A stretch of 64,000 nt of DNA from Monocercomonoides exilis PA203. Its lineage: Eukaryota; Protista; Preaxostyla. Positions 10,141 through 43,132 of the stretch are shown here, piece by piece; positions within the stretch are counted from its first letter, which is position 1; each line of letters begins with the position of its first letter. The translations under genes and the position numbers were made by a program. The stretch covers positions 372,001 through 436,000 of the forward strand of contig LSRY02000061.1 of NCBI GenBank assembly GCA_001643675.2, written 5' to 3'. Below the pieces are notes generated by a model. The model did no database searches. It saw only the letters and a program-made list of their open reading frames with translations, and was not told the DNA's origin.

Positions 10141-11552
10141 AAAATGAATGTCAAAACAGAAAAAAGAGATAAATATGATTTTTCAAATCAAACTTGCATT
10201 GAAAAACTAAAAAAATCGCTTTTGTCATCTGACGTGAATGTATTGCACAACAGTCCACACTTTTGGTGTTTGTTATCGTCCCTAAAAGAATCTCGATATA
10301 AGTCTCAACATTGGGGATAATCAGTCATTGTTTGATTCAGCTGATGCTGAATGAATGAGTCTCTTTTATTACGTGTGAAAATGTATGTGTGATATTCGGT
10401 TGCATTTCAATCGAAAAAACATATTTGACATTCAAAAACAGTTATAAAACCGATCACCACCATTAACATTGAATCAAGACTTGCTCTAACACTGTTTTCC
10501 GTTTTCAAGGCAGATAATTTGCTGAAGACAATATTTTTTTGAAGATTTGAAAAGAAAAACATTATGATACTCTGCAACACATGCACAAAGCGAAAACAAT
10601 ATTATTAGCCAGACTTATATTATCTTTCGCATTTATTTCTGGGATAACAACACCAACTCCGCATATAGAGAAATAATTACGTAATAAATAATATGTGATG
10701 ATTGCTATATTTGTTGGACAAAAGGAGAATCACTCCTTTTTCGTTTCACAAAGAATTGCTTTGAAAAAAGAAGTCGCTTTTCTGTTCGCTTTTGTCCTTT
10801 CCGGATTACAGAAAAAATTCTGAAGATAAAATGAATAGATTTGCGACGAAGAAATTCTTCAAAGCGACATTATTTGAATCGTTGTATGAACGCATGAGGG
10901 AAAACAAATAAATGTTCATTTTCAGTTCAAAATCTGGCTTGTTAAGCAATTTGGCCCATTTTTGAATAGCAAATAAAGATGGCTATTTTTGCGAAGAAAT
11001 AAATGTATTCGGTATAAAACTCGATTCTTCTGTTATTAGCACACATAATATAGACAAATGTTCACTGCCAACGTTTTCATTCTAACTGAAGAATAGCAGA
11101 ATCCTAAAAAACGTTTTTGTCACTGTTGACATTCCTGATTTCAATCTTTTCATTCCTGAGAATGTATTCTGCTTTCCGAATAAATTGCTATTGGTATTAG
11201 AGTGAAATTATACATTCTTGAATTGCCTTGTCAAAAAAAAGACAGTTATTATAAATACATGAGTTTGAAAGAACACCTTTGTTTATCAATGATTCATTTC
11301 AAGAGTTGTCTTGTTCTTTTGATGTCTCCGCTTTGAGAAAACATATCACAAAACAATGAATACAAATTAAACAGAAAATCTATTTTCAAATTGATCAAAA
11401 AATAATATAAAAATTGGAATCTTGAAAACCAAAACTTTTTGAATGAATCGATTATTTGTTATCTAATTCATGTTAAAAGGAAAATAAAACCATATGTTAC
11501 ATATAATGGAAACGGAGTGTTTTTGAATTAACTGCGATGGGACAAATTTTTG

Positions 11553-14500
11553 GGCAAGTTCCAAGTATGTGGACCATCGATAAATAATTTTTTTCATAAA
11601 TTATACGAAAGAAAACGTAATATTAATTAATTTAAAATTAGTTTTATTTGTCGAAAATGCACTGTTAATAACTTTCTATTTTTAATTTGATCTGTCCCAT
11701 AAATATTTTCAAACAATCATTGTTTTTTGTTCTTTCATTTTTTCTCAATTGGACACGTTACACATTTTTTCATTCGAGTTTTTGCAATGTTTATTTTTTG
11801 AGAAATACAAAAAAATAATATGTTAACTCTTTTCATTGTTTTTTCTGATGTATGAGCCCAATTCACTTTTTTCGTTTATTTCATCGATGATATTGATTCC
11901 CGTTCATTTTAAACCATCAGAATCTTTAGCAAAATAACATGCATAAATATAATTTTTATTTTGCATTACACTTTAAAAAGGAAAAACTTAAAAACAAAAA
12001 ATTCAAAGACGAAGAGGATTTTTCAACAGCCATTCTTCTATTGCGATCTTCTTCATTCAGCAGCGTCAACAACGGAGTTTTAAATCCGTGTTTTTCGATA
12101 TTCAATCTTTTGAACAGCTTCGAAGTCGAAGTTGTTGGATGCACGTTCCAAACAATTAAATCAGATGGATTCAAAAATGGAGGAGCTATGACTTTTGAGC
12201 TGAAAGTGGCAGATGGACATCTGAAGATGAGGAATGAAGGAGTGACGGACAGGATCTGCAGTAGTTCTGAAGGATCTGGGGGAGGAATCTATTTGACATG
12301 CACGACAAACAACAACGACACATACACATTTACGGAGATGAGTGTTTGAGGAAATAAGGCACACCAGGGAAGAGACATGTTCATTGTGGCGAATGATCTG
12401 AGGAAGGGAGTGAATTCTGAGTTGTTTGTGTTCGTTCAACTTTTAAAGGAAGAGAATGGATTTTGTATCTGAGCTGATGCAATTCGATCGATGGATTTTA
12501 TTTGTCTGATTTGGTGTTTTCTGAGAATAAAGCATTTGTTGGCAGAAACATGTTCATATTGAGCTCCGATTTGAATGCCTCTGTTGTCATTGGAAGGTTG
12601 ATGTTTGATTGGACTGAATGGAAAAACACAACAGCTTTCTTTGGGGCAGATGAAGTGAACTTTACAGAAGGCATATCTTTGGACAAGCTGCTGTTTGAGC
12701 ACACAGACACTTCTGTTGTTGTGTCGTCGAGTGGAAGAGACATCCACGGGTGCGGATCAGAAATGGAGCCTTGTCTGTCGTTTTGGGAAGGGATGAGGCA
12801 TTTCAAAGAAGGAATTCAGTTCAGAGAAATCAAAATCAACACAAGTGCTACCATTTCAGACGAGTGGGAACTTTCAAATAGCTCAATAAGCCCAGCTGTT
12901 CCTTCTTCTCCTGGCTATTCTTCTTCTTCCTCTTCTGATGAGCCTTCCTCAGATGAATGCACAATCAACGTGGGAAAGGTTATTCAATCTCTTTCTGAGC
13001 CTTCTGAGGCTGTGCTCACAAACAAGCTTGTGCTCACCTTCACCTCCATCAACTTCTGCCTGCCTTCGTCATTCGAAACATCGCAAAAGGAGCTTCTTTT
13101 CACTGAGACAGGAACAGCCACGCTTAACGAATGCTCATTTGCGATGCAGACAGCAGAAGAAGGTGTTGCTTTTGTGCTTTTCCATGTTTCGTCGGGGAAA
13201 CTTTCGATTGAAGAGTCCAAAATGGCCGAGCTATCCTTTGCGACATTGGCCATCCGACTTTCAGCACCCGCTGCACATTTTGTGGTAAACGCGTTTTCTG
13301 TTGATGTTCTGAATTTTGCAGATGGATCGTTTATTTCTGTGGGGGATGCAGAAGAGAAGGGGGATGAGGAATCAGTCTAATCAGGGAATGGCAAAGAAAC
13401 GAAAGCGAGCAAAGAAGCGATCGAAATCAGACTGGAGAATCTTCAGTGGCATCTCATCCGCAGATCAAATGTGAATGCATCGATCATTTCTCATGAAAGC
13501 GCGCTGTCTGATGCGCTGGAGATGGATAACTCGATATTCAGCGACTGCAACAGCGAGTCTCAGCTGGGAGGGGCGTTTCGTGTGTGGATGAAGGAGAAGG
13601 AGGGTGGGTTGGCTGACAGCTGGGCAAATGAGGGATGTATGCAAGTTAATATATCAACTTTTGAAGGGTGCGCATGTTCAACGACTGAGGGAAAAGGAGG
13701 AGCAATTGCATTGAATTGCTTGGACAATCCAGACAATTCAAATGTTACTTCTTCAAGTATTGTGAAAGGTCTGCCAATTTCTTTTCGCCAAGTCAGGTTT
13801 TCTTTAAACAGAGCTGAAGTTACGAAGGATCTTTTCATTGTCTGCCGATCGATTGCTGAGCAGATCAACGAGGCGCTGTTTGCGATGGACTTCAGCGAGT
13901 TAGCCTTTGACAGAGAAAATGCCATCTTCGGGATGGACAAAGAAAACGAGGAGCCAATTGATTTGGTGCCATTTATTGTGTTCTACAAGTCAGAGCGGAT
14001 ATTTGTTTCAGGGGAGAAAGGGAAGAACGAGAAGGACTGTGGGCGAAGTGAAGACCCGTGTGAGACGCTGAGCGAGGCTGTGCGGCATCTCAACGAAGGA
14101 TCATCTCAAAAAGTGTTTGTAATGGGAAAAGTTATTGTTTCAGTTGAAACAATCATTCATTCTGTGACAGTTCAGGCTGTTGGAAACACACAGACTGCGG
14201 TTATATTTGACTCGGAAATAACAAAATCAGATGAAAAATCGAATTATGTTATATCCTCTTGGCTGGAAAGCCAGTTTTTGAAGATAAACATCGCATTTGG
14301 ACCGGGGTTTGCTTCACCTCATCACTCTGTCTTTAGCGTGAGGAGTGGAAATCTGACGCTCAGTGATTGTTTCATAACCTTAGAAGAGTCTGCGCAGTTG
14401 GAAAACACCGTTATTTGTGTTGAGAGTCATTGTTTGTGTTTGAGCAATGTTTCGTTCTCAGCCATCCGCTTGCAGGCATCGAGGCAGCAGCCATCAGCAG

Positions 14501-15228
14501 AAGCATTTGGAGCAAAGCAATCTGAACAGTCTTCTTTTGCTTTGTCTTTGTAAGAGCCAGAAGCAGGAAATTCATTCTTTGAAGCATGCTCAGGTGCTGC
14601 TGTGGAGTTGCTTTGTATCAGCTTCAAAGAGCTATCTTTATTTGTCGTGTCGGGATATGCCACACAATCACCAAATTCATAATCAAGTGCAAGCCATACT
14701 TATATCAAAACTCACACAGGAACAGATGCTTGCTCTTAACAATTCTCTGGATTTCTTCCATAAAAGTTCTTGATTAAATTCAGTTTGAAAAATTTACCAG
14801 TTGTTCAAATATTGTTGAACATCAGTTAATAAAAGTATGCTTTCATTCAACGTAATTCAGATCCAAATTTTTGAAAAAGAAACAAACAAAAATAAATAAA
14901 ACACAAAGATTTAATTTGTTTTGAATAATAACTGTCAAAAATGATGATGTGAAAATATATCAAAAAGATAAAAGCAAATAATAAAAAATAAAACTATAAA
15001 ATTACTTGTTATGAGATGATAAAGCTCCAAGCCTTCATTAAAAATATTAAATAAAAACACGAAAGTTTAAAAAAATAATTATGGGATAGATCAAATGAAA
15101 AATGGAAAGTTTCAAACAATGCATTTTCGACAAATTAAACTAATTTATTATTCATTTATATAACATATTCTTTCGGTTACGATATAAGAAATATTTTTTA
15201 TCGATGGTCCACATACTTGGAACATGCC
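11553..15228. mobile_element. Non-autonomous long-TIR element (Pack-Merlin-like #2), 3676 bp, perfect 8-bp TSD
   Basis: TSD AATTTTTG at 11545-11552 and 15229-15236. TIRs GGCAAGTTCCAAGTATGTGGACCATCGATAAA... / ...TTTATCGATGGTCCACATACTTGGAACATGCC extend imperfectly for about 160 bp (11553-11714, 15065-15228). No transposase inside. Confidence 0.9.
11820..14777 (+). pseudogene. Cargo of element #2: Cys-containing repetitive (beta-helix-like) surface-protein gene with stops and frameshifts
   Basis: Consecutive ORFs 11939-12349, 12502-13380 and 13471-14553 carry recurring modules (G.GGGIYL / GKGGAIAL, G(K/R)(D/N)MFI, CGSEMEPC / CGRSEDPC). They are broken by single stops (12347, 13378, 14551) and frameshifts. 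Confidence 0.75.
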
Positions 15229-15311
15229 AATTTTTGATCTATAGCGACTTTTCAAAAATAAATTTCCATATGAAACTTTTTGAAAATTTTGAAAATTCAA
15301 CAAAACGATAA

Positions 15312-15688
15312 CAGATATCGCACAAAATACCGGACAAGATCGAATTCACAACAACTGTAAGAAGAAAAATTCTTACTATTTTCCTCAAAATTCATCTCAA
15401 TGATTCAAACTCAATTGATAAACGAGACTTTTCAAATAGCTTCGCTTGAGCTCAGAAAAAATATATATCGAAATCTCGGAGAAACTCAAAATCCTATTTT
15501 TCCGAGATTTTAAAAATATTTTATTCTGAGCACAAATGTAGCTATTCATTAAGTTTCGTTTATCAAATGAGTTTGTCCTGATGAGATGTATTTTGAGGAA
15601 AATTGTCAGAATTATTCCTCTAACAGTTGTTGTGAATTAGATCTTGTCCGGTATTTTGTGCGATGTCCGGTATCTTATGCGATATCTA
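15312..15688. mobile_element. Fully palindromic MITE / foldback element (about 375 bp)
   Basis: Arms GATATCGCACAAAATACCGGACAAGATCGAATTCACAACAACTGT / ACAGTTGTTGTGAATTAGATCTTGTCCGGTATTTTGTGCGA pair inward to about 15480/15500. A 19-bp unit is duplicated in tandem at the right end. Confidence 0.8.
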
Positions 15689-16164
15689 TATTTGATATTT
15701 TTTTGCAAAAAAGAAAGAAAGAAAGAAAGAACGAAAGAATAAAAGAAAAAACCATCTCAATACAAAATAATAAGTTTCATTCATACGTGTGATTGATTTA
15801 TCATTAATTTTTAACAAAATGTTGTGTTATCCAAAAAATCTTTTCAATGAAATATTTTCTTTTGGGATAAAAATGTTGAGTTTTTTTTCTTTTTTGCAAT
15901 TTAATAAAAACAAAATATTCATTATATTTTTATTTGAAGAATGTCAGATGAAGCATCTGATTTTGTCACGTCTTTAAGAGAAAGGGCTCTTCGAGCAAAA
16001 AATTCAAAACAAAAAGAATCTGAAAATTAGTTTGCAATCATTATCCTGAAAGATTTTAGTAATTTTTTTTTTAATTTTTTGCTATTTTGTTATGAAATGT
16101 GCGTTGAAATTGCAGTTCCATTAAAAATGCAACAAAAAGACGTCAACATGTGTATGATGGGAAA

Positions 16165-19100
16165 ATGGATGCTCAAATCTTTTCAAGAAAGAATCCAACA
16201 CCGAAAATAATTCCAGGATATCTCAGAGGTTTTTTCTTTGTGGGTCATTTTATAAAATGTATTAATATTATTTATCTGAAATAAAAAAGTGAATCCAAAA
16301 TTTCTAACGCAAGCTGAAATTGCTCAAAAAAAGCAACAGGCTGCGGAATCAAAGACAAGAGCACAGAAGTGCATTGAAAAAGCAGAAGCGCTGTTGTCTA
16401 AAGATCTTCGACAACTTATGGAAATCGAAGGAAATGAAGAAACTTCAAAAATAAGAGTTTATGCTCTTCCAGAATTTAATCTTGCTAAAAGCGATGCCAA
16501 TGATCTCAAAGGAGGAGACGACTTGTTTTTATCTCAACTTCGTTTGAGCATTTCGACTCTTATTGGAAATTTACGATTTGAAGAGAGATCAGAAATGTTG
16601 AGTGAATTGAATGAATGGCTGAGTGACCACAGCGTGTCAAAGCAACCAATTCCTACTTTGACGGATATTTCTTCTTTTCCTTTTGATAACAGCTTTGCTG
16701 TTTTGAAAGATGCAAAAAATGCTAACGGATCTATGAACGAATTTGAATCAGCAAGCGACATTAATTTGAAGGAATCTTCTTCAAACCCTGTTTCATTTCA
16801 AAAAAACGAGGAAAGTCAAAAAGAGGACGGCTTGAAAGAACAAGTGCATAAACATCCGATTATACAGGTTCCAGTATCTTTATCACATTCTGTGAATACT
16901 CCGACTTCAGATGCAACGCCTTTGTTGTCGCTCACTCCACTCAATGCGATGGAAGATAGAGAAAGAAGCAAAGATAGAAAAAGAGAAGAGAAAAATAGCT
17001 TAAATGAATTACCTGAAAATAATATGGAAGATGGAAAAGGTGATGCTTCCATTGAAAAGGAAAAAATTGATGAAGAAGAAAGCTCAAAAGCTGAAGCAAA
17101 AGCGAATGATAGAAAAAATGAAAGCGTTGATGACGACAAAGAAGAGGGAGCTGGTGAGGAATATCCCATTCGTGTTCGCGAAATTGAAGCAGAGGAAAAG
17201 AAAGAGCAGCTCGACAGCATTGAAGCTTGGATTAAGCAGCTGAGCGAGGAAATCAGTTGCATATGGGAGAAATGGACTGAGGTGCAGAAACAAGCAAGTG
17301 GTATGCTGGAAATGGATTTTAAAAGAGAAACAAAATTAACAATAGATTAGAATAGAAAGAGAAAGAAAGAATGAAAGAGAAAGAAATATTTTCAAAAAAG
17401 TTCGAAATTTAAACGATTTTTTAATGATTTTTGAACGAAACAATCAAACCCACAAAACAATTTCTTTTCAATCGTATCTAAAAAATAATCTTATTGTTTT
17501 TGGATTTTTATTTTAATTTTCACTTTAAAATAATACTATTTTCCTCCCTAATTTATTCTAATTTGTGTATGCATTTTGAACATGTTTCATAATTTATTCT
17601 TTTTTATTTCTTTCAGAACTTCAGAATATTGAGCGAGTGATCCAACTTCGCCAGTCAGAAATAGAAGAAGAAGCCAACAAAGCAAACGAAGAAGGCGAAG
17701 CTGAAGAAAAAGAAAGAGCTTTCAAAAACAAGAAAAACACAAGAAAGACGATGGGAAAAAGACTTCTTCAGAGTGAAACAAAAGAAGAAGCAGAAGCAGA
17801 AGATGAAGAGGAAGAGGAAGATGAAACAAACGAGAAAGACAAAAAACCTTCCAAACGCGATTTATTTTTTCTTCAGCAGCGACAGAAACTGCTTCTGATG
17901 CAGAAGAACACACAAGCCTTGGAAGAGACGCTGATTGAGCTGCAGACGAAGATAAACGAGAAAGAAAGAGAGCGAAAAGAGCTTCAGCTGATTTATGAAG
18001 AGCACTTGAACCGCCTGGTGATAGGCACACATGGCAGAGGAGAGGGAGACAAAGACGCTGAAAGGAAGGAGAAGAATGCGAAGAAGAAGAAAGAGAGAGA
18101 GAGAGGGACAGAAGCAGAGCGGGTGCTGTATGAGAAGGCGCAGATTGAAGGGAGGATGAAGCGGATGGCAGTGCGGCTGAAGGAGAAAAGAGGCGAAATT
18201 CAGCTGCTTCTGCGGCAGATGCAGTCGTTTGGCGGAGATGAGCAGATCCGAATGATACTTGCCTCAGCCAGCTCCTCTGCTTCCTCTTCTTCTTCAGCCT
18301 CTTCTCTCCTTCTGGACGATCCACTTTTTGTCTCTTCGTCGCTGTCGCTGGCAGAGCTGGATGAAATTCTCAGGTTTGATGAGAGAGTGAGTGTGGCTGT
18401 GCAGACAACAAACAAGAGAGACGAGGCGAGTGGAAGCGAAAGAACACCCAGATCGCCTTTTGCCTCGTCGTCACGAGCAGAATGGAGAAGCAGAGAGAGA
18501 TCAGCAAGATCAGCCAAGTCGCTGAGTGTGCATTCACCACTGTTGATGCAGAAAGGTTTGTGCTATTTTCTCATTGATGAAGAGAGAATATGAGTGAGAG
18601 TATGGAAGAATGAATTTGTTTATGCAAATATGTAGTTATGAGAGATAAACATATTTCAATCATATTATTGCTTTCGTTTTAATTTTTTATATTTGATTGC
18701 AATTTATTAACTTGTGAATATTTTTCTAAATATGTTATTGGATTCTCATTTAAATACAAAAGGAGATGAAGACGACATAACAGAAAACGGAAGCACCAAA
18801 GGCAATGCCAATGATCAGTTTGAAGAAGACGAGTTGCTTTTCTCGCAGCCTCCATTTTCAGCTGATTCAGTTGTGAATGAGATCTTTGCAGAAGAGCAGG
18901 AAAAAGACGAGGAAGGAAATTTTGTGTTTGGAACGAATGAAGTAAATGTGGATATTTTGATGAGGAGGAGAGCGGACCTGCTGAAGATGCTGATGAAAGC
19001 AAGTGCGCTGGCTGAAGAGAAGAGAGAGAGGAAGAACAGAATCGACGAATGGGAACGAGAACGGAAGGAACGAAGGAGCAGAAGCAGAAGAAGCACAAAG

Positions 19101-21357
19101 AAAGGAGAAGGAGAAGGAGGAGAAGATGAGGATGATGAAGGGAATGAAGAAGGAATCAGATCTCGTGACAGGCCAATTCCTCGTTCTTTTGCAGGTGTTT
19201 CTGCTTCTGCTGAAAGGGATGATTCAGATTTTGATGAGCGGTCATATGAAAAGCTGAAGAGAACAATTGAAGTTGTGGATGAAGATGGAAATGTTGTTGA
19301 TTTGAAGGGTTTGTCACCGAAAGAGAGGGAGAGGCAGATTGAAGCTGCATACAACAGCGGAAGAGCAGTGACAACAGGAGGAATGAAAATGGGGAGGAGA
19401 AAGAAGGGAAGAAGGGAAGGGAAGGAAGGGAAGGATGAAAAGGATGAAAAGGAAAGAAGAAAGAGAAGAAAGAGAATGAAGGAGGAAGGAGAAGATGAAG
19501 GAGAAGGAGAAGGAAGAGAAGGAGAAGAAAATTCTAGTTCTGAATCTGATTTGGGATTTGGTGTTGTTAAGGAAAGAGAGTTTAACAGAGCAGCAACAGC
19601 AGATGAAATCAGAAGAATGAAAAAGAGAAAACACAAAGAGAAAGAGAGAGAAAGAGAAAGAGAAGGATCAATTATCAGTGAAAGTGCTGAATCAAATGGA
19701 GATGAGAAAGAAGAAGGAGAATATGAAGGATTGGATGGGAAGAGAGAAAGAGAAAGAAGGAAAAGGAAACATTCAAAAAATCAAAGAACAAAAAGGGGAG
19801 AAGAAGAAGAGGAAGAGAACAAAAAAAAAGAGCAAACAGAAAGAATGAATAAACAAAGACGAATGACACCACACAGAAAATCAGAGAAAGAAATGAAAGA
19901 GAATGAGAGGAGGAAAAGGAAGAGAAGGAAGAGAAGCGAAAATGGAGAAGAAGAGGGAGAAGAAGAAGATGATGAGAAGAGGCGGAGAAGAAGAATAGGA
20001 AAAGACACATTATCTATCATTTCATCATCATCTTCTTCTTCCTCATCATCTTCCTCTTCTTCTTCTGACAATTCTGCCCCATTTCCATCTTCTCCTCTTT
20101 CTCCCAGCGATCTTTCGCCCTCTTCCTCCTCCTCCTCCTCCTCCTCTTCTTCTTTCTCTGACTTCCCTTATTCCTCATCGGACTCTTCATCTGATTCCTT
20201 TTCTGACTCGTTCTTCTCAAAATCATCAGAAAAACGTCATTTGCACAGCGAAGACGGAGAAAGCAGCACAAACAGAAGCGATTTGAGTGGAGAATCGCTT
20301 CTTTCGCATTCGATTTCATTTTATTCGACACATCAGTCAGATTATGAGGATGAAGAGGAAGGAAAAGAGGGAGAAGGAAGAGGAGGAGAAGAATTCGAGA
20401 GAAAAGAGATGAAAAGAGATGAAGAAAGAGAAGAGAAGGAAGAGAAGGATGAAGAAGAAAGCAAAGAAGACGATGAAGTTAAACAGAAAGAGTCGAAAGA
20501 AAAAAGAGAAAATAACATAAAAAAAAGGAAGCTTGATCGACTTTTGAGAGAAAGAGGATATGTTTTTGATGAAAAGCAGCACATTTATGAGAAAGAAGGA
20601 GAGAATCATTTGGATGGTGAAGGAGATGAAAGAGAAGAGAAAGAGAAAGAAGGAAAAGGAATAGGAATAGGAGAAAGAGGTGGAAGAAATGAAGAAGAAG
20701 AAGAGAGAGAGTTTAGAAGGCATTCGACTTCAAAAGGAAAAGAAGAAGACGAAACGAGAAAGAAAGACTCAGATGGCAAACAAACTGAACAAGAACAAGA
20801 GAATGGGAATGTTCAACAACGAACATTGAGTTATTCTCAATTGAATTCTTCTTCTTCTTCTTCTTCTGATTTGGCAGATAACATTACATCGCCAAATGGA
20901 TGGAACAACATATCTTCTGATGGACAGTCAAATTTCAATGAAAATGAGGAAAATGCAGAAAACACTCAAAATGAACAGCAGGGATTCAATTTAGGAAGTG
21001 CAAAACATTCAACCAATAATCTTGCCAAAGGAGAATCAGAACAAGGCAGCAGCAGCGAGCAGGAAAAGACGATTGGAACGAGGATGTTCTCATCTTCCAA
21101 ATTAGGCACACAAATAAATACTCAAATGGATAAGAATGGCTTTTCAGCAGAAAATGAAAGAGGAACAAAAACGTTGTCTCGTTCGTCTTCTTCTGCTGCT
21201 GTTGCAAATGGGAAAGGAAAAATGACAGCAAATGTGAAAGAACAAGGCGAAATTGAAGGAGAAGAGAAAAGAGGAGAATCCGAAGGCAGAATGCAAATAC
21301 AACAGATAGACATCAATCCAGCATTCCCATCCGCTCCACAGCATTCATACAACACTC

Positions 21358-29239: not shown

Positions 29240-32200
29240 ATGGAAGAATCAATGGAACAATTGATTCTTTTTTGGGATCAATTGAAGGAAAAAATACCAG
29301 TTGTTGAAAGGCATGAAATTAAGCACTTGATTGGAGAAAGATTAATTGATGAAAATGAGGTTTAATATCCTTACCAATTATTGTTTTTAACTTAATATTT
29401 TCATAAAGAGTCTTTATAAAGAATTAATTGGATTACTAGAGATATCTGGAAAGTATGAAGAGTTTGTGGCACAAAAAGTTCAAACCCCTATTGAGCCAAA
29501 GCCAAGGTTTGATTTATCAAAAATATTTTGACTTTTAGAAATATCGCAAATGCAATTCATTTTATAGACCTATTTTTTCTAAAGAAAGAGATATTTTGGA
29601 GCAAGACATTTTACTATTTTTAAAGAGGATAAGTGCAGTTTGGATTAATATTAATTTTCATAATAATAAATTCAACTTTTTCAAAGCGATTCACTTCACG
29701 TTTTGAAGACAATATCGCTATTGAAGCACTTAGCAGCATCATATCTAAGCCACCTTTTCTTTCTTCTGACAAAAACTTGTTATCTTATTTGACTGCCAAT
29801 GAAGCAACAAATGTGCAAAGACCTTCAACTGCTTCTTCATTGCGGATGTCATCAACTTTCTCGCGCCCAAGCAGTGCACTTTCCCTCTCGGGTGGGATTC
29901 CATCAACACCTCGGTATTCAAGATGTTGTTGTTCTTTCACTTGATTTCATCAAATTACTTTTTTTTTTAAAATATATTCAAAATTTTGAAAATTTTCGAA
30001 GTGCTCCCACACCTCCATCACTCCCTCGTCAAGTCACTTTATCGTTTTTAACTCCAAAGCTTATCCATTCTCTAAAGGAAACATTTCAAAGCGAGAACAT
30101 GCTGCTAAAAGGAGAGATTGAGGAAATTAACGAGGCCATAATGATGAATACATCAGCTGAGATAGAAACGAAGCAGTTCGTAAAGAAAATGAAGGAGCTG
30201 AGCGATCTGGCAATGAAGCCACCGTCTTTGGAGTCACTGACGGGATTCAGAACGCGACTGAAAGAGTGGGAGAGGAAAGAGAAAGAGAAAGAGAAAGAGA
30301 GGGAGAAAAAAGAAGGGAGAGAAGCTGATGAAGAAGATGCTACAGGAAGTGATTGGATTCCAATGGCAACTCCAAAAATGAGAGCGATGTCGAAAGACGA
30401 ACAGAGAAGAAGAAGCTCATTTGGAGGAAGGCCAACATCGCCAATACTTCGTCAGAGCCTTGAAAAATCTTCTTTTCCTTCTTCTTCTTCCTCTTCTTCT
30501 GCAGCTTCTTCTGCTTCCACTTCATCTTTCGCATTTCCATCTCCATCTTCGCCAGCTAATCCAAACATCCCACAACTTCTTCACGCTCAAAATTCTTCTT
30601 CTTCTTCTTCTGCAAATTCCAATCTTCGCCCCGTTTCCCCTTCTTCTCCGCGTCTTCCTCCAATCAATGTGGAGAAAGCTGACTCTTCTTTTCTCTCTTC
30701 TTTGTCTTCTTCTGCTGCCTCTTCTCTTTCAATTCCTTCTCATTCGTCGCCTTCTGTTCGGCGTGCATCGCGTGGATCTTCGTTTTCTTCCACTTCATCT
30801 TCTCTTCTCAACACAACAACACTTTATTCATCTTCTCCTTCTGCTTCCTCCTCCTCTTCTTCTTCTTCTGCTTCTGCTTCTTCAACTTCTTCTTCACTTT
30901 CACTTCATCCTTCAAAAGTTCGTTCGCAAACACCTCCATCGAGACAGCCACATCACTCGCTGAACACTTCATCCCAATCAACACCTTCATCCATTCAATC
31001 ACAAAAGACTCAAAATTCCTCCTCCTCCTCCTCTTCTTCTTCTTCAGCGATTGTTCAGAGCCAGTTGTCTTCTTCTCACCACAACTCAGCAGTCAGAAGA
31101 GGCATCCACAGTGCAGATGAAGTTCTGTCTTCGTCAAATGACGCTCGTTCTGCCTCTCCAAAAAGACCAGCTTTTTCATCAGCTGCCATTTCACCCAAAA
31201 AGAAAAGTGTTCAAACAAACAGAAGTGTTCAGCCAATTATTCAGTCTGCTAAGCCTCTTTTGAGTCAGAAGGAGAAATCATCAGCAAGTTCATCATCATC
31301 ATCATCATTTTCTTCTTCTTCTTCTGCATCTGCTTCTTCTTCTTCTTCAAATGCTCAAACAATATCGCCACTTCAGTCTCTGATTGATCGTCTGTCGATT
31401 GTTGACTCATTTCAGACAGCTTCTGCTTCGAGTGTTGAGTTGAATGCTCCTCAAAATTATTCAAATTTACCTGAAAAGACAACAGAAACAGCTGAGCCAT
31501 CAAAAGAAGAGGGAAATTATAAATTGGATGATGAAGAAATAAATGAAGATGAATTAAGTGATGAGGAGGAAGATAATGAAGAAGAAGATGATGAAGAAGG
31601 AGAGGAAGGAAGAAGGAGAAGTGCAAAGGAAGGCGATCGCAATGAAGAAATGAATTTAACAAAAGATTCATCTCTTCGAGACAAAGAAGATAAAAAGCCT
31701 GCCATTCTAACACAGCACACTTCTTCATTGCAGCCATCACAATCAATTCATTCATCTGCTCATACAAATACTTCTCATTCAACATTAAATACATCCTCCT
31801 CCTCCTCCTCTTCTTCCTCTTCCTCTTCCTCTTCTTCTTCTTCCACCCGTTCCATTCCAGTCACTCCAAAGAAGCATCTTCTGCCATCCACTCCTCAGTC
31901 TCTCTCATCTGGCAGCACTTCCTTCGGCCGCCCTCGTCCCTCTCAAAACACACCTCATCCTTCTTCTCCTCATCAGCCAATCAAACACACAACACAGTCA
32001 CAAATGCCCCTCTCCACTCAAAAGGATGCACATTCAGACAATTCAGAGGTGCTGCCGATGTTGTGGGAAGACGACGAAAGAGTCGGGGCGCTTTTGGCGA
32101 AGGAAGGCGATGCTGAACGAGAGAAGGCGATGGAGGAAGAGTTGGATGTGCTGTTGATGACAGTCAGAGGAGATGGATTGAAGGAGAACGGGAAGGAGAG

Positions 32201-33398
32201 GAAGAAGGAGAGGAAAGAGAAAGAGGATGAAGAGGAGAAAGAAGAAGAGAAAGAGGAAGAAGCATTTCAAGAAAGTGATGATGATGCTGATGATGGTGGA
32301 AAAGAAGATGTAGATGAAGATGATCTGATTGGAATACATTTATTGAATGAGATAAAAATTGATAGCCAACAACAGAAATCTGTTTTTTATCCTTCTTCTG
32401 CAATGTCTTCTCTGCCTTTGTCTTCTTCTTCTTCAGAAACAACAACAACAACTTCTTCTTCTTCTTCATCTTTGTTATCTTCACCTTCTTCTGCACAATT
32501 GTATTCATTCCCTTCGTCTTCTGTTCTTTCTTCTTCTTCTTCTTCTTCTTCATTCAAAATCAACACACCAAATCAGCTGAAAAGTGGAATTCTGTTTGGT
32601 GCTGGTGTTCCTGCTTCACTTGCTTCTACAATTCGTCCTTCTTCTTCTTCCTCCTCGTTCTCTTCAACACTTCGTCCTTCCTCTTCTTCCTCCTCTTCCT
32701 CAAAGCAATCCAATTCAGTTCCAAAGTCCAGCTATTCTGCCAATCACACACGAAGAAGTGCTCCTTCAATGACACCTCGTCCACACACAACAGCTGTGAG
32801 CAGTCGGAACACAATCAACATTTTAGATGAAGAAGCAGCAGAAGAGCCAAAAAGAGCGAGAAACGAAGGAAGAGGAAGAGGAAGAAGAGCAAAAGAGGAA
32901 GAAGAAGAGAAAGGAGTGATGGAGATGGTGCTTGTGGATGGAATACAGAATGTGATATCAGATTATGAAGATGTGCTGAATGAAGAGGAAATGAGGAGGA
33001 GAGAAGAGGAGAGGAGGAGGAAGGAGAGGGAGGAAGACGATGATTATGCAAAGATGGCAGAAGATGATGCAATGGATGGTGATATTTCTGAAGATGATGT
33101 TAGTCAAATTAACAAAGAACAAAAACATAACAAGTCTGCAACAAACAAAAAAAAGCAAGCATCTGCAAATAAGCGTGTGAAAAGAGGAGGAAAGGAAAAA
33201 GAAGAGGAAGAGGAAGAGGAAGAAGAGATTATTAGAAGGACAGGCTCATATGAACATTTTAAGGATATTATGCATTTGAATCAGTTAAGCAGAAACCAAA
33301 AAACACAAAAGAATATTAAGGGTAAATATTTTGTGAAACCTGATGATGAAAAAGCTGTTAATGAAGAAGAAGATAGATTGAAATCGTTCTTTTCTTGA
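29240..33398 (+). CDS. CCDC24-like N-terminus followed by a long Ser-rich low-complexity region
   Basis: FWDQLKEKIPVVERHEIKHLIGERLIDEN and LKETFQSENMLLKGEI...PPSLESL resemble the CCDC24 family. Several short introns precede a final exon of about 3.4 kb. Confidence 0.55.
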
Positions 33399-33652
33399 AT
33401 GACTTTCAATAACTTATTGATTTGATGCGACTGACATTATGCTTTCCGAATTTGTATTTTCTTGAAATACATGTGAAAAAGGAAATTTTTGTCAATAATT
33501 ATTTTTATTTTTGCCTTTTAAAATATTTTCAGGTAAAGTTCAATGGCCAGTATGCTTTATTTCTTGTGCACTTGATTTTGTTTTCTTTATGAAATTTTCT
33601 TTTTTATTGAAATACAACATCAAAAATCCCCATAATTAAAAGCTGATTTTGT

Positions 33653-36248
33653 ATGGAAAGCATAAATGATATAACAAGCCCATACAGTGATGTATGCATA
33701 TTTTTAGAATGAACATCTCTAAGTTAATATAAAACTCATTTTTTACCAACATCAAATGTTTTTGATTTTTCTTTTTATCAATCCTTTCAGACAAATTTAT
33801 CTGAACGAATTAAGTTTTGCTGCAATTTGTTTTTATTGTTTTGAGTTAAGTTCTTATTGTTATATTGCTTTTAAAGCACGACTTTTACAGAAGATGATTC
33901 TCTGTCCCCTTTTCCAATTGCGTCAAATATGGCGTTTGTTTATTCTAATCTTTTTTGTTTTCTCTCCAGATATTTCAAATTCATAAAGAACTTCATCAAT
34001 TGAGACACAAAATGCTGATGTTCAAAAGAAAATGTATGCTATTTTGTGGGAAAAGCACATGAAAAGACAGGAAAATGATGAAAAAGAAATTAAAATGGAG
34101 CAAGAATTAAAAAGAAGGCAAATCCAACGACAAAAACGAAGCATGAAACGTTTTGATAGTGTGCTGTATCGCTGCGACCATTATGCAAAAGTTCCAACAT
34201 CAAGAAGCGTCAATTTTCTTTCAAATTCTATTTCCATCATGCCAAATGATTTTTCGCATTCTTTGTATGAAAGAAAATCTTCAGAAGCTGATCTGTCGAA
34301 AGACGCTCCATATAGCTTATCTTTTACAAATTTACCTTTCGATTTTCAAGAAAATCATCCTTTCGGTTCTCAAACAAGTAGATCTTTCACTCGTGATAAG
34401 CAATCAAGAAATTCCATAACATCAAGATCTTACACTTTTGATCATTCAAAAAGCATTGATAACGATTTTGATTTTAGTCGTTCAAACTCTGTGCAATACG
34501 GATCAGTTCCGCGTTTGGATAATATGAACTTTTTCAATGAGCAATCAAGAAACTTGAATTTTTCTCCAATGACACTTTCGAGACAAGGAACAACAGAAGA
34601 TTTAACTTCAAGTCGATTATATATCAACCCTTTGGCAGAACACACTCGGCCGCCATTTTTTGTGAAGAAAAGAGTTGGAGAGATGGAAAGGACATTGTCT
34701 GTGAGGATGAATGAAGAAGCAGAGAAGAAAGGGAAAGTGTTTGAGAGGGATGTGAAAGAGCAGATTAAAGAAGAGGAGAAAGAGGAAGAGGAGCTGAGGA
34801 AAGAATGGGTGGCTCGCATGAGGAGAAATGAAAGAGAGAGAAATTTTGGTATGCAGAGAAATGCTGTTTTTGACGAATGATGGCAAAGAAATGTTGAAAT
34901 AGTAATCATTTGTGGCAACGTTTCAGCTTCACAAAGTTTTTGTTTTTCGTCTGTAATTTTATTATCATTTTTCCTCTTCACATTTTATTTGGAATTTCAA
35001 TGTTTAATTATTCTGCTTTCTTTTCATTTCAATTTTTATCTTCTTTTCATCATTTTTACTAGCTCGACGATCTCTTAGTTTGCAGCGATCTTTATTAATA
35101 GGAGAACCATTTGCACAGAAAAAGGCAAAGAAGATGGCAGAGAAAGCTCATTTGTGTGACTCATCTGCCAATTGCACTGTTGCAACTTCTGCTTCCTCTC
35201 CATTTTCTTCTTCTTCCATTCAAAGCATTTCATCGACGAATCATTTTTCTCCGTCTTTGAGATCTTCATTCACGTCTTCTATTCCTTGTATCTCGCAAGC
35301 AAGCAGAACGAGTTGTTTTGCTTCTGCTTCTTCCTTCCCGTCTCGTTCATCTCCTTCGACATCTGCACCATCCGCATCATCTTCATTATCTTCATTATCT
35401 TCTATTTCTTCTATTTCTTCTGCTGCGATGACTCCAAGTTCAAACAGTATTTATTCCATCTCCCCTGTTTTCTATCCACCAACTTCAAAAGCAAAGCATT
35501 TGAGTGAAAGATGTGACACTTCTGCAGCTGATAGACAGCCTTTCATTGGCAAGCATTTCACAGCCAAAACTGCTTTACGTCCATTCAGTGCTCCTCGTGC
35601 CATCAGATATGCTTCTTCCTCTTCTATTTCTTCTTCTTCCTCCTCCTCTTCTTCTCCAACAGCACATTCTTCTTCATCATCTGAGTTGCCTGAACATTCT
35701 AACTGCCTTTCTGCATCGCCTACAACACCCCCTTCGTTCCCGTTTGTGTCTGTGCTGCCGCCTCAGAAGGCTGTTTGTGGTCGGCCTGGCTCATTCACAG
35801 AAAGGCCAATGCCACGCAATTACTGCCACAGGGCGTCTCAGCATCCAACTGTAATGGCTCAGCCTTGTTCGAATGAAGGAGATAGGTGCATCGGAGCTCC
35901 GATGCTTCCAGCCACTTCAGATGCAACTTGTCAAAACAGAAGGCAGATGAATATCCAATCTGATGATTGCATTGCGAATTCTTCTTCGGCCAAGTCACTT
36001 TTTGATGTTATGAAACTCAGAATGCTTTCTGAATGTGGGAAAACGTTTGCGATTTTTTGAAAGATTGTTTTGCTTTTCTAATTTTTAACAATGGATGTCA
36101 TTTTTGTCTCATTTTTGAATATTTTAGTCCTGTTTGCCCATATTCATCAGAAGCAGGAGCAGAAATTAGAAAGAACTGTAGAAGTTATCGGCCTTCTCCA
36201 AAACTTTATGGACTTGTCAATTCTGATAAGCATTACAGAGAAGAGTAA
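33653..36248 (+). CDS. Hypothetical multi-exon protein (coiled-coil and Ser-rich)
   Basis: ORFs 34032-34880, 35080-36060 and a terminal exon to 36248 are separated by AT-rich GT-AG introns. The start is uncertain. Confidence 0.55.
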
Positions 36249-37021
36249 CATTACAATAAATGTCATTTCCTATTCGATATATTTATATTTGATTTCAACT
36301 ATCTACTCTTTTCAATTTGGTTTTCTTTATTAATTGTCATTTTATCAGAAATTATCTATTTATTTTCTTTCTTTCTTTTATTAAAGCTTTTTAAATTGAT
36401 TTTTATTTATATTGTCATCTTATTTATATGTATAATGTTTTTTTATTTTTTGAACGGATAAATTTTCATCAAATTTTCTTTCTTTTCAGGAAAGATTTTT
36501 AAAATCAAAAATGGTTATGCTATATATAGTGGTAATAAATTAATGAATATTTGATTTCAATTCTTTATTTTATTGAAATAAATCATTTATATCGAAGAGT
36601 TAGAAAAAATATGTTATTTTTGAATTCATCTTAGGATTAAAAACACGATTTAGTGTTTTCTCTCAAAACAAAAATGAAATCAAATGCACCCCAAATAACG
36701 AGAATAACTTTGGATTTCAAACAATTTCCATCAGCATCACTGCAATTTTTTTTTTTTTATGTTTATGAGAAAAAAATAATTGATTGTTCAAAAAAATGTT
36801 TTTTATTTCAATAAACATCGAATTAATAAAAACAATTTTTTTAAAAAATTGAACAATAAAAATTGATTAACAACATGTGACTGTCTGATTCGATTCTCCT
36901 CATAAAACAGTTTTTTTCTTTTTAATAAAGAATTATAATTCAATATTTATCGAGCAAAAAATTGTTTTCTATTTCTTTAGTTTTTCAGTTAACAATTTTT
37001 CTCATTTTTTGATCTCTTCAA

Positions 37022-39533
37022 ATGGAAGCATGGACAAAAAATAAAATATCTCGTGAATGATTTGATAAATGAAAACCGATCAGTGAACCATAAACTTTAT
37101 ATTATTAAATTTTTTGTTGTGTCTCTGAATTCAATGCAAGTGGAAAACGGAGAAAGTGTTTGAGGTTATTTTTCAGCATAGAATTAACGAAAATCCTTGT
37201 GTTGAACCTTGAACGATTGTTTTTAAAAAATTATCGAAAATAATGTTTTATTTTTTGGTTTTTCTGAAGTACTCAGATGTAAATCAATCCATACAAAAAT
37301 TACCTCATGTACTACCTCAAGAACAGCACGACATACTCGACGAACTTGGGACAATTGCTTGGGAAGGTTTGAATTTATGAATAGATGTATTTCTTCTTCA
37401 TATTTGTAAAAGACATTGGAAGCAATGAAAGTCATTTAAATAATTTAACATTAATTCGATATATTTTGGAATCTTTGGCGACTTCTCAGGATGAATCGAT
37501 AAAGGTTGGCTTTTTTAATTATTTTTTAAAAATTTCTTAAAAATGCTTTTTTGAAATTTGAAAAGGTGAAAACTTCAATTCTGCTCATATTAATAGGTTA
37601 TTCTTTGAGTAAAGATCGACCTTTGTTTCTTGCTCAAACAGTTTTTCCTTCTGTACAAGATTTCATTTTGGTGTGAATAATTTTGTTCGTTTTAAAATTA
37701 ACTAATTTCAATGAAACAGTCTTCTGATTCCGATATTTCTCGTGAGACAATTAAAGGGTTCAGGTATGCAGATTTTAATAAAATGATAAGACCTAATTTA
37801 TTATTGTTATTAAAATTCTTAGACATTTAATGGAAGCAACAATTCCGAAAAAACAACAAACACTTCATTCATTTGAAAAAACAGTTGATGAACATCCAAA
37901 ATCAACGACTTTTCAAGAAGAAAAAGATGAACCGATAACTAATGATAAATCATATTCGCTTCTTTTCAATCGACCAATTAAAGCAACTATCGAATATGTA
38001 TCTAATGTGCTGAAGTCTTCTACATCCCCTGATGATCTCAAGCTTGAAGCACTTGAACTGATTTCATCTCTTATCAAAAATGATGTACCACCGAAAGTGT
38101 TGAGTTATCTTGAAGTTTTGGTCGAGGGATTAACTAAGAATTCCGACGAGAGTGAAGAAGTCCAAGTTAAGGCAATTTGGATTTTGATGATCCGTTTTAA
38201 GAGGAAAATTTCTGTGAAAGAGAAAAATTGCATGACCGGAACCTGCCGTAATATTGTAACCCAAATGGAAACCAACGACAAATCAAAGGAACTGGAAAGG
38301 AAAAGCAAGACGAACGATGCACAATTAAATAAGCCAAAGAGTTTCCATCATCAATTGCTTCCTGTTCATCGAAACAGCCCTCAGTCAACAAAATCCCTTA
38401 CAAAATTTTCATCTCCAACAACACGCACGTCTGGTCAATCCGTCAAGTCTTTTGCATATTTCAGTCCTTCTGGAGCAATTTCACCTTCTTTTATTCCTTT
38501 TTCACCAGACAGTACCCAATCACAACCATCTTCGCATCTTCTTCCGGGTGCATTGCCTCCTCCTCCTCCTCCACCTTTACTGCATATTAATCATCATCAT
38601 CATCATCAATCTTCTGATCTGACTACAAAAACTTACCAACACGAAACAAGCTCAATTCCACCAGCAAATACTTCTAAGCAGAGTGCTGTATCAGGCAAAT
38701 CATCATCTATTTCCCCTCCTTTATCAGCTGAGCCTTCAGCTGCTGTTTTTCATATTCGCAATGAGATAAAAGAGAAATCTGGTGAAAGTGCATCATCTGA
38801 AACAAAAGCCAGAACAGAGTCATTTTACGCTTTTCCTGTTATTACTCCTTCTGGCCAAGTATCTACTTTTTTTAATAATCATGCGCTTCCTCAAAGTGAA
38901 AGCGGTTCAGTGAGCAAGCCTTTTTTCCACATCTCCCCGCCGCCTCGTATGTCATCTGATGCTTCAGCTCAGCCGGTTTGTGGAAAAGAAAAAACAACTA
39001 AGCTGGACTCTCCTCCATGTGAGGCTGATGGTTTTGTTGAAGTTGACAAGTTGCTTTCCAATCTTAGTAAAAAGGAGAGCCAAAGCTCGCACAGTCCCAG
39101 TGACACTCCACGGAGTACGTTTGAGCTATCGAAGCATATGCCAGATGAAAAAAAGAAACAAGAAGAGAAACTTCTAATCGACACTGTTCCTGAAAGCCCA
39201 TTTTTGGAGCTTCCAGAAAATGCCTTAATCGCAACGTCTGAAAATGAGATACCTGAGGATGTTTTGAAAGAATATATGGAAGAAAAACAAAGAAATGAGT
39301 TAGACCATATTTTTGCACTGAAACTTGGTATCATAACGAATGGAAAATGCGAGCTATGCGGATTGAGTGTACCGACTAACAAAGTGAATGAACATATTCA
39401 GCTGCATTCAGAATTTGAAGAATATGATGAGTCACGTGTGCAATGTCCAGTTTGCGATCGAACTGTGTTGAAATCAGAGTTTGAAAAGCATTCTCATTTT
39501 CACAAATTGCAGGATAAAAGCATAGATTTATGA
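37022..39533 (+). CDS. Hypothetical protein with a helical N-terminus and two C-terminal C2H2/UBZ-like zinc fingers
   Basis: Several short 5' exons, then ORF 37830-39533 ending in CELC..EHIQLH and CPVC..KHSHFH. The start is uncertain. Confidence 0.6.
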
Positions 39534-40283
39534 GTGCAATAAAATCAAGCATTATTTACGGAGTGATTTACAAACCCAATTTTTTATTTTAGAAAATCCG
39601 AACAAGGAATTAAATGAATTATGTTTGTGGAATTCATGTAAATTTTATTTTTTTAGACATATTATTTATAAACATTATCACCAAGATATCGTTTCACTAT
39701 TTTTTCCAAATATTTTTCTGACAGTCTGTCCCAAAAAAATGTTGATCTGTCCTTTTTTAATGTTGAGCATCCAGCAATAAATAAAAAATAAATTTCCCAC
39801 ATTCGCCTTTCGTCATAATTAGCATTATCACAACATGGAAAATATTCAACTGTTGGATGCTAGAACAGTCGAAAAGAAAAAGAAAATAATAGAATCAGTT
39901 CCAAGATCCTTCAAATTCAGAGTTAGTGCAGTTTCTTTACCTGCTGTTCATCCTTTTGAAGAACGTATTCATCAAACAATAAAAACGAGAGCAGCAATGA
40001 GAGCAGAGGAAGAATGACGAAAGAAAATTGAAGATCTTAGAAATGTTGGAATTTTTGAGAATCGAAAAACGAAAAATCCTCATGCTAATGCAACTGATGT
40101 GAAAAGAAAAAAATTATCTAATTTTTTTACAAATCCATGGTCAGGAGAAGAGCGAAACATGGAATGCTAATGAATGCACATTAACAACAATTGCTACAGC
40201 CAGGTCCTTGTCGAAATTGAAGGCGGGAATTGACATTACTCTTCCATTGCATCAAAAAGGAAGAAAGAAAAAGGTCGAGTATG

Positions 40284-43053
40284 GGCATAAGTGAAGAATA
40301 ATACCTCCTTCAATTTAAAGATATCTTGAACAATAATAGCATGGAAATAAATAGCATAAAAAAATTACACTTTTGGGTGGAGCAGTTCTTTGAAATATCT
40401 TCAAATTTTTATTAGATAAAAATATTTGATCAATCCCATAATTAAATATTTGAATATGATTTAAAAGTTTTTTGTGCGAACGCGGAAGAATTGAAGATTG
40501 ATTGATGTATTAAACAATGCACTGCTTAAAGTTACATAAATTATGTTTGACTTTGCTATATTTTTTTCTCTTTTTTCATGTTATTCTTTTTATTTGTAAC
40601 TTTCCTAACTTAATCAATAACATTAGATTTAATAGAAATTCATTTAATTTATTTTCATCGAACTGCACATTGAGTATTAATTTGTGATTGAAAATATTGA
40701 AAACTCCAGACAATTAAAATCATTTAACAAAAATGGATAAGTGAATGGTATTACTTGGCTGCAATCAGTCGAATACATGTATTTTCAGAAAACAGAGTGG
40801 AAAGTTGTTCAATCACAAATTGGTGTGGAACAGGCTGGTATTTTTCCCTCTATTATATGCCCTCAGATGCTCAATTCCTTTTCACCAAATGTAAGTGCAT
40901 TTCAAATTCTGGTGGAGATTCAACAGGTTCTTTAACATTTCATTATCCTCCACAAAATAAAACAAATCAATTTTTGGTTAATGATTTCCAGTTTATAAAC
41001 AATAAATTGACATCAACTTCAACTTCATGGGGAGGAGCTGCGCTTTGCAACACAGAAACTTATTCCTGGATGAGTGAAATAAAGTTCATCTCTTTCTGTT
41101 TCTTTGATGAAAATGCAGCAACAAATGGCAGATGATACGATGTATTTTTCAATGGAAGAAGCATCATTCAATCTCCATTTGAGAATTGCGATTCGGCTAC
41201 CATTTCATCAAAAGTCTTGAAAGCCAGTCCTTCTGGAAAAGAGGTTATCAACGTTTGCTCCCTTTCATCTATTCTCTCCATTTCAACTTCAAAGAAATCC
41301 CATACGTAATTTTTCCTCCTTTTTTTCTTCGTCTTCTCCTTTTCTTCTTCATCTCTCTCTCCTCTTCTTCCAATTCCTTCCACTCCTCCTCCTCTTCACT
41401 CAAATCTTCCTCTTCTTCTTCATCTTCCTCTTCTTCTTCTTCTTCTTCTTCTCTTTCTTCTTCTTCTTCTCATCCTCCTTCAACAAGCACTTTATTCCCT
41501 CCAGCCACACTTGATGTTCAGTGTGTACTGCAAACACATTCAAAACAGACAAAAAAAGAAATCAATTCAGAAAAGCAACAATTAAATAGAGAGCATTCTT
41601 TATTTACTCCTCCTTCTTCTTCCTCTTCCTCTTCTTCTTCTTCTTCTTCTTCTTCTTCCTTTTCTTCTGCAACATTATCACCGTCATCTTCTTATTCAAC
41701 TTTTTCTTCTTCTTCTTCCATTTCTTCTTTTTCTTCAAATTCATTAATTATTCAAAAATAATTGGAGATAAAAAAGATAAAAGTGAAATCCTAAATGCAT
41801 ATAATTATACTCATGCTTTTTATTCTTTGAATTATGTCAGTTGTGGGATAAAGAAAACATTGAGCTAAATAGTGGAATTGCGTGTGGTTTTCGATCAGCA
41901 AATAGTAACAACAAGGCAATTTGCATCTGAATAATTCGTTTCTGAAGGAGCATTGCAGACAACAAAACTTTGTTTGTTGATTTCTTGCTGTAAAGAGCAA
42001 TTATCGATTTCATTTTGGATAAGATACAGTAACAAATGCTATATAACAAAATGGCATCTGAATTCTTAACGTTTTTTTGGAGATTTCAGTGAGAAGAAAA
42101 GAAGGCAAGAAGATGAAATGAAAGATAAGAAAAGAAAATTAATTGATATTGATAAGTTTAAAAACATGGACGAATTGATATTTTTGATTAAGTTGTTAGC
42201 TTTTCAAATTCAATTCATAGATTTGTTTGTTATTGAATGTTATTAAAGACTTTTTTTGGATTCAATATATTTTGAAAATAATGAATAAAAAGTTTTTTTT
42301 TTTTTTTTTTTTGATTTCATCATTCCTTTTACGGAAACAACGAATAAATAATTTCTATTGATTAAAATATTTTTTTCTTTTCATTCCGCTTAAACGAATC
42401 AACAAAAAAATTGAAATGCTTCTTTGATAGCATATTTTTTTGAAAATAATAAAAGATATGAGATAACTTAATAAAAGTGAAATGGAAAAAAATCGGTATT
42501 TTCACACCTAAGAATCTATTGATTGTTATTTGAAAACGATTAAAATGACAACCTATTTCTCAATACGAAAGAATAATTGTTTATTCGAATTTCAACATCA
42601 CCAAAATAACAAATTTTCAAAAAGATGAAAAATGATCGTATTGAAACGTATATTTTAATTTTGAAATAATTTGTTTATATTGATTAAAAATGCTAATAAA
42701 TCAAACAAACTTTTCACTGTTGTCAGAGAAGTGGAAGTTACAAATAAAAAGAATAACATGAAAAAAGAGAAAAAAATATAGCAAAGTCAAACATAATTTG
42801 TGTAACTTTAAGCAGTGCATTGTTTAATACATCAATCAATCTTCAATTCTTCCGCGTTCGCACAAAAAACTTTTAAATCATATTCAAATATTTAATTATG
42901 GGATTGATCAAATATTTTTATCTAATAAAAATTTGAAGATATTTCAAAGAACTGCTCCACCCAAAAGTGTAATTTTTTTATGCTATTTATTTCCATGCTA
43001 TTATTGTTCAAGATATCTTTAAATTGAAGGAGGTATTATTCTTCACGTATGCC
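40284..43053. mobile_element. Non-autonomous long-TIR element (Pack-Merlin-like #3), 2770 bp
   Basis: 319-bp TIRs (40284-40602 / 42735-43053) with only 2 mismatches seen, and GGCATA...TATGCC termini. The 8-bp TSD is CGAGTATG (40276-40283) / CGAGAATG (43054-43061). It interrupts the Tc1 transposase frame. Confidence 0.93.
40700..41310 (+). pseudogene. Cargo of element #3: fragment of a beta-helix-like (F..N...GGA) host protein
   Basis: ORF 40755-41135 (CKCISNSGGDS..., FINN....WGGAA, FCFFDENAATNGR*YDVFF) continues through a stop and is followed by a Ser-rich TCT tract at 41320-41740. Confidence 0.55.
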
Positions 43054-43132
43054 CGAGAATGAACAATATCAATCAATTGTTTGGGAAAAAATGAAGCAGA
43101 ATCCTTTGAACATAGAGAGGAAAATATCATCT

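Follow-up and report, generated by a model that had tools for sequence, protein, structure and literature searches.

Merlin transposons, whose prokaryotic sister group is the insertion sequence (IS) family IS1595 (PMC3129680, PMC8101967), fall into seven families, F1–F7, in the genome of the protist Monocercomonoides exilis. According to the survey that defined them (Lopes et al. 2021, PMC8101967), all seven produce target site duplications (TSDs) of 8 bp, five start with GGCA(T/A), and Merlin terminal inverted repeats (TIRs) range in length from 24 to 462 bp. The largest gene family of this genome consists of tyrosine kinase-like genes (PMC6759080), and 28.9 Mb of unclassified repeats, whose nature is unexplained, overlap that family (Treitli et al. 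2021, PMC8767320). Here we describe three elements, E1, E2 and E3, in a 64,000-bp stretch of the genome (the window; assembly GCA_001643675.2, LSRY02000061.1:372001–436000, about 28 kb from the contig end), which have Merlin-like ends and enclose pieces of host receptor-kinase genes. These elements are very probably non-autonomous Pack-type derivatives of several Merlin families, E2 being placed by a partner element that shares its TIR and E1 and E3 by their terminal signature.

Structure and movement of the elements

Elements in the window were called by filtered self-BLAST and alignment; a plain repeat search was swamped by Ser/Glu triplet tracts. The window was compared with 12 loci (L001–L012). 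All six ends of E1, E2 and E3 start with GGCA, the termini reading GGCA(T/A), and the TIRs of 327, about 175 and 319–320 bp, respectively, all lie within the Merlin range. The TSD copies agree at 7/8 positions in E1, 8/8 in E2 and 7/8 in E3, and for E2 lengths of 7, 9 and 10 bp fit less well. An initial annotation of this DNA had proposed three elements with such ends and long TIRs, two of them complete and flanked by 8-bp TSDs; the elements are real, the TSDs of the two (E2 and E3) are as described, and E1 has now been completed. It had also held that no transposase lies inside, in keeping with the absence of any Merlin transposase match within E1, E2 or E3 and of any transposase found by Pfam in the cargo open reading frames (ORFs) examined. 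Beyond the first 5–6 bases the three TIRs are unrelated (5–11/20 terminal bases equal), and they therefore represent three separate families.

The coordinates below are those of the window, and features lie on the plus strand unless marked minus. E1, complete once the contig was extended, runs from -195 to 2700 (2896 bp; L006 1122–4017). Its left TIR (-195 to 131, 327 bp, with the inner part at 1–131) is 100% identical to the right TIR (2374–2700, minus, 327 bp), which starts GGCATAGG; the right TSD (2701–2708) forms the 7/8 pair CGAAATCA/CGAAATCC with the left copy. E1 is inserted in a Merlin transposase gene (2709–3585), within the part that encodes the zinc finger. This is the Merlin relic that the initial annotation had recognized in the window; it is indeed present (Pfam E 2.8e-12), has lost its first catalytic Asp, contains a stop and is the target of the E1 insertion. 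As a helper for the three elements it was rejected, because it is dead and belongs to a different, GGT-type TIR family. In E2, the left TIR (11553–11727) and the right TIR (15052–15228, minus, about 175 bp) are 82% identical and are bounded by perfect copies (8/8) of the TSD AATTTTTG at 11545–11552 and 15229–15236. In E3, the TIRs at 40284–40602 (319 bp) and 42735–43053 (minus) are 99.4% identical (318/320; two differences), with TSD copies at 40276–40283 and 43054–43061 that agree at 7/8.

In total, 261 kb of DNA were scanned for GG-ended TIR pairs with an 8-bp TSD under a terminal-dinucleotide constraint, with five shuffles as control. The scan returned 7 matches, compared with 0 in the shuffles, and these comprised three Merlin-transposase elements and four Pack elements (E1, E2, E3 and L008 16506–18956), nothing else. 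The probability of a TSD match of at least 7/8 at a fixed junction is 7e-4. No TSD-bounded Pack-Merlin was found by the scan in five loci chosen for other reasons (about 110 kb); this, together with the broken state of the cargo, leaves the earlier suggestion of a major route of gene duplication unproven.

The elements have moved as units. The E2 family has at least six copies on six contigs (E2, L003, L004, L005, L008 and L012), and a parent-type gene lies on a seventh. The copies share TIRs, spacers and the start of the cargo, their flanks are unrelated, and the L004 copy is shortened on its 3' side. Their TSDs score 8/8 in E2, 4/8 in L003, 1/8 in L004, 6/8 in L005, 0/8 in L008 and 8/8 in L012. 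Empty sites, which the initial annotation had named as a check, were found for both E1 and E2. For E2, a joint in the DNA sequencing runs skips 3684 bases, equal to the element plus one TSD. A second E2-skipping joint, with 12 other letters and about single-copy depth, is most likely a paralogous empty site; a paralog and an allele both fit. For E1, the empty site is a paralogous Merlin in L001 that is 91% identical over the junction and contains the target 8-mer once. E3 interrupts the transposase gene of a Tc1/IS630-type element (39722–46893, CAGT ends) and splits it. Contig depth in the DNA runs, when summed, is tens of times higher in the TIR and in most bins of the E2 cargo than in the left flank, a ratio that is not a copy number but gives a rough hint of many further copies.

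These observations bear on two other explanations. According to the first, a TIR pair was filled in place with nearby gene sequence, independently of transposition, and never moved. Single-copy Pack-TIRs of animals form mainly by such gap filling (PMC8277862). Each family described here may have been born in this way, and E1 and E3 were seen once each. For E2, however, it is refuted by six copies on six contigs with common breakpoints and spacers and by the parent on a seventh, and as a general account we consider it very unlikely. According to the second, the structures are assembly artefacts or independent solo repeats that face each other by chance, the latter a weakness that the initial annotation had itself foreseen. 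Long-read assembly can create long identical inverted repeats, but the TSDs, the empty sites, the multiple diverged copies (six in the E2 family) and the zero shuffle matches refute this explanation, and an E2-type element is also present in the older 454 assembly (LSRY01000484.1). Its probability is practically nil.

A fourth Pack family, the L008b type, has GGCATAGGTC ends and TIRs of 190–209 bp, with copies at L008 16506–18956 (TSD 8/8) and L012 10275–13967 (TSD 7/8) that hold different N-terminal receptor pieces, and a lone end at L003 17753–17938. The E1 TIR is loosely related to this family across its first 60–100 bases. In L012, the L008b-type element with its different receptor piece is nested in E2-family cargo, and the gene annotation merges both into one model.

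Several further features were seen at E2-family copies. A 997-bp inverted repeat, 99% identical (L004 6517–8755), abuts the left end of the TSD-less L004 copy. In L008, past 12670, the right flank of the copy L008c is a ubiquitin-peptidase-like fragment and not the remainder of the Merlin that L008c interrupts; an adjacent deletion there is likely. The two TIRs within the L004 and L008 copies are 97% alike, whereas TIRs of different copies are 68–91% alike, which suggests conversion between the two ends of a copy.

Superfamily of the transposase

The E2 family includes members that encode a transposase. The element at L008 3239–8819 has an E2-type TIR (over 158 bp, 82% identical to the left TIR of E2) and comparable cargo; its open Merlin ORF matches Pfam DDE_Tnp_IS1595 at E 5e-17, contains the three catalytic motifs QVDE, SDEW and NAIE and is cut at its 5' end exactly at the Pack copy L008c. 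The second such element is on LSRY01000484.1 in the older 454 assembly, in the part of the PMC8101967 supplement inspected by eye. It consists of an E2-type TIR (identical to E2 at 29 of its first 30 bases), an uninterrupted Merlin ORF, several kb of host pseudogene cargo and the other TIR, flanked by the perfect 8-bp TSD AAATGTTT. Thus, transposase-bearing members of the family carry cargo too. Because a Merlin-transposase element shares the TIR of E2 at these two loci, the E2 family is assigned to Merlin, and E2 itself can be called a Pack-Merlin element on direct evidence of sequence. The E2-type transposase was absent among the 120 matches listed in a Merlin protein search. By eye, the cargo-carrying Merlin of LSRY01000484.1 is apparently inserted in a copy of a dispersed repeat, which occurs in the window at 4579–4838 and 43129–43385 (68%) and also in L001 and L007.

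For E1 and E3, the GGCAT ends and the 8-bp TSD make a Merlin origin probable. The Merlin assignment of the initial annotation therefore stands on a TIR-sharing transposase element for E2 and on signature for the other two. None of the three belongs to F1–F7 (PMC8101967). Matches to the E1 and E3 TIR motifs in the searched part of its Merlin supplement were chance matches in coding DNA, plus one outward-facing L008b-type end.

An alternative for E1 and E3, though not for E2, is that they are Pack-MULEs (Pack-type Mutator-like elements) or belong to another superfamily with 8-bp TSDs and acquired GGCAT by convergence. Pack-MULEs typically have long near-perfect TIRs, as here (319–327 bp), and chimeric cargo. 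In addition, no cognate Merlin was found for E1 or E3 in the loci and the part of the supplement searched, and their terminal 20-mers equal the Merlin ends compared at 7–10/20 positions only. MULEs, however, usually have TSDs of 9–11 bp, while the TSD is 8 bp in E1, E3, the L008b type and the nested L012 element. The hAT and P superfamilies have 8-bp TSDs with CA/TA-type termini and short TIRs, unlike the GGCA ends and long TIRs seen here. The sole TAG-ended element seen, L011 14638–17887, has a perfect 8-bp TSD, is possibly a hAT and is distinct from the GGCA-ended elements. Furthermore, GGCAT is the commonest Merlin terminus in M. exilis (PMC8101967), most published families have, by eye, the A at position 12 and the ATA at positions 15–17 that are found in E3, and Merlin TIRs reach 462 bp; one Merlin TIR in the loci compared measures about 140 bp. 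We therefore judge this alternative unlikely.

Source and fate of the cargo

The cargos of all three elements are pieces of one gene superfamily, which encodes proteins of 1600–4000 amino acids (aa) in which repeated ectodomains occur together with a transmembrane stretch and, at the C terminus, a match to PK_Tyr_Ser-Thr. The initial annotation had expected fragments of different host genes; the pieces are host-derived, but they come from different parts of this single superfamily. The cargo of E2 (11975–14697) is an internal fragment of a receptor kinase of the MONOS_524 type. MONOS_524 itself, an intact, single-exon gene of 3931 aa that is TIR-free and adjoins housekeeping genes, provides the parental gene that the capture idea called for. 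The E2 cargo corresponds to nucleotides (nt) 5561–9280 of this gene (aa ~1855–3093, about 3.7 kb). Both breakpoints are mid-ORF, and the sense strand has no poly(A) tail. MONOS_524 and the L003 copy align colinearly over 3730 bp at 90.4% identity, and a 1018-bp segment missing from E2 near 12430 is also missing from three other aligned copies. A decayed TIR-free paralog, MONOS_13692 (92–95%), is slightly closer to the E2 cargo than MONOS_524 is, so the exact donor is narrowed by similarity to one of a small subfamily. A third gene, MONOS_15264 in L007, was rejected as parent because it shares the 1018-bp deletion, which is absent from the L003 copy and from the intact gene. An intron at the 5' cargo border of E2 was likewise rejected, the parent being single-exon.

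E1 has chimeric cargo. Piece A (1376–1843, minus) is an internal ectodomain repeat (73–75% aa identity; 81–83% nt identity to the giant gene of L007), and it is joined to piece B (699–1127, minus), the C-terminal kinase-like tail of a giant receptor gene from a different subfamily, marked by a WKAPEAG motif (80% aa identity to MONOS_3540). The pieces were compared separately and not as the joined protein of the spliced 198-aa model, and no protein compared matches both above 35%. The cargo of E3 (40781–41216) is an N-terminal ectodomain piece of a giant receptor gene (79–81% nt identity to the L007 gene, 54–58% aa identity), followed by Ser-rich tracts to about 41740. For both elements the homologues in long genes are at family level (78–83% nt identity), and the exact donor is not among the loci compared. 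All of the short E2 homologues compared (5/5) lie inside E2-type elements, which means that some of the short MONOS gene models annotated as "hypothetical" represent cargo of transposons.

The cargos examined are all broken, pseudogenic fragments. The E2-family copies contain 3–6 in-frame stops each (4 in E2), which matches neutral decay of about 4.5%. The pairwise ratio of nonsynonymous to synonymous substitution (dN/dS) among cargo copies and TIR-free paralogs is 0.30–0.54, compared with 0.86–0.88 (minimum 0.57) when neutral evolution is simulated under the observed mutation spectrum. Along the cargo, identity varies in patches, and in some pairs the cargo is more alike than the TIRs or spacers; the TIR-free L007 copy has the 1018-bp deletion and its junction sequence in common with L008c, 90 kb away. 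These hints point to past purifying selection, or to gene conversion with functional paralogs in either direction, as something that may have acted on the cargo.

The same low dN/dS, patchy identity and shared deletion would be expected if the cargo were useful, either under purifying selection during its spread or as a dispersed archive, with gene conversion exchanging sequence between it and the working receptor genes. This is compatible with a Pack-Merlin origin, and we hold it as a tentative possibility. Against it, the stops in every copy are as many as neutral decay predicts, and one-way conversion, from genes into dead cassettes, fits the data without any function. RNA contigs align to the cargo and not to the TIRs; they are mostly divergent paralogs, some of which run past the cargo end as the parent does. 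Contigs cannot show transcription, and these are no sign that E2 is transcribed. A still broader scheme, in which several Merlin families form a genome-wide shuffling or archive system for the giant receptor-kinase superfamily through capture, nesting, recombination and conversion back into working genes, strikes us as rather doubtful. If true, it would help to diversify the receptor-kinase family and would explain some of the "unclassified repeats" (35%) with which the receptor kinases overlap.

We favor the Pack-Merlin explanation, for which the following course can be proposed. During repair of a break inside a Merlin copy, the template would switch to a host gene, and a mid-ORF piece of that gene would take the place of the transposase between the TIRs; frequent donors would be genes of the giant receptor-kinase superfamily. 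A transposase from another copy of the same TIR family would then cut out the cassette as a unit and paste it into other chromosomes, often within other transposons, with 8-bp TSDs as the trace. The movement itself is observed, and mobilization in trans by a Merlin transposase is a reasonable inference from the sequences. The cargo would afterwards be altered by internal deletion, by additional captures or by nested insertion, and would decay, all of which are seen in the present copies.

Several points weigh against this account. The TSD has been lost in three E2-family copies (4/8, 1/8 and 0/8). The capture step is reconstructed from its products, and the activity is putative. No cognate transposase with E1- or E3-type TIRs was found in the 12 loci or in the searched part of the PMC8101967 supplement. 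The E2 parent has no introns, so that intron retention cannot separate a DNA from an RNA template. Finally, the cargo dN/dS below the neutral value is not explained by a single capture followed by decay.

Other repeats and gene remnants were seen in the window. A palindromic miniature inverted-repeat transposable element (MITE) at 15307–15690, about 70 bp to the right of E2, has very high depth in the DNA runs, and a 78% copy (L001 11008–11411) directly adjoins a Merlin. A second palindromic, MITE-like repeat lies at 61148–61369, with a relative in L004 (3824–3997), and a Pogo-like DDE_1 transposase fragment lies at 59922–60680 (minus; Pfam E 1.3e-10). A gene-like repeat occurs in three dispersed copies (71–86%) at 6074–6615, 56596–57305 and 63627–64000, and again in L004 (15332–16689). 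The ORF at 48637–49020 has a signal-like N-terminus, an acidic linker and a Cys-spaced helical end, by eye a saposin-like fold, with no Pfam match at E 0.01.

Comparison with known systems

With these elements, Pack-type capture now includes the Merlin/IS1595 superfamily and a metamonad protist; one family, E2, is documented by a parent gene, by several copies and empty sites, and by a transposase element with a shared TIR. They also offer a testable partial answer to the kinase-overlapping unclassified repeats of this genome (PMC8767320), and a genetic tool might be developed from a transposase that moves cassettes of 3–7 kb. Targeted literature searches, with most subscription journals and Repbase outside their coverage, found no report of gene capture by Merlin. 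Such capture is expected in principle, is well supported here and is apparently undescribed. With the published Merlin families F1–F7 the three elements share GG termini (GGCA(T/A) in five of seven), 8-bp TSDs and the genome, and the E2 partner shares DDE_Tnp_IS1595. However, those families measure about 1.4–1.5 kb, with TIRs of 23–29 bp and a transposase only, whereas the E2 TIR family has TIRs of about 175–190 bp and host cargo with or without a transposase; the term "non-autonomous" is not used in PMC8101967, and gene capture is not seen in the parts of it that were inspected.

Cargo capture is not special to Merlin in M. exilis, as the Tc1/IS630-type host of E3 also holds a host fragment. 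This lies at 45370–46075 and derives from another expanded family; the element, whose right TA is kept and whose left one is mutated, is Pack-Tc1-like. The passengers of bacterial IS elements are usually whole working genes, unlike the broken eukaryotic fragments found here. In bacterial transporter ISs and mobile insertion cassettes, IS ends likewise enclose passengers with or without a transposase, and these are moved in trans by a cognate transposase, according to PMC3129680, which cites Siguier et al. 2009; in the present case mobilization in trans is presumed. Plant Pack-MULEs and Pack-TYPE elements (CACTA, hAT, PIF and Mariner; PMC8903248) are similar in that a cassette with TIRs and TSD but no transposase carries host fragments, with chimeric cargo from several loci and in several copies. 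That account covers plants only and leaves Merlin unmentioned, whereas the donors examined here belong to a single expanded superfamily of receptor kinases. The Pack-TIRs of animals (Tan et al. 2021, PMC8277862, with Merlin absent from its main text) are also TIR elements with host sequence, and their multicopy cases are attributed to template switching followed by transposition. Most of them, however, are single-copy, lie near the parent and have a median length of 224 bp, while the cargo described here measures 0.4–3.7 kb and is dispersed over chromosomes.

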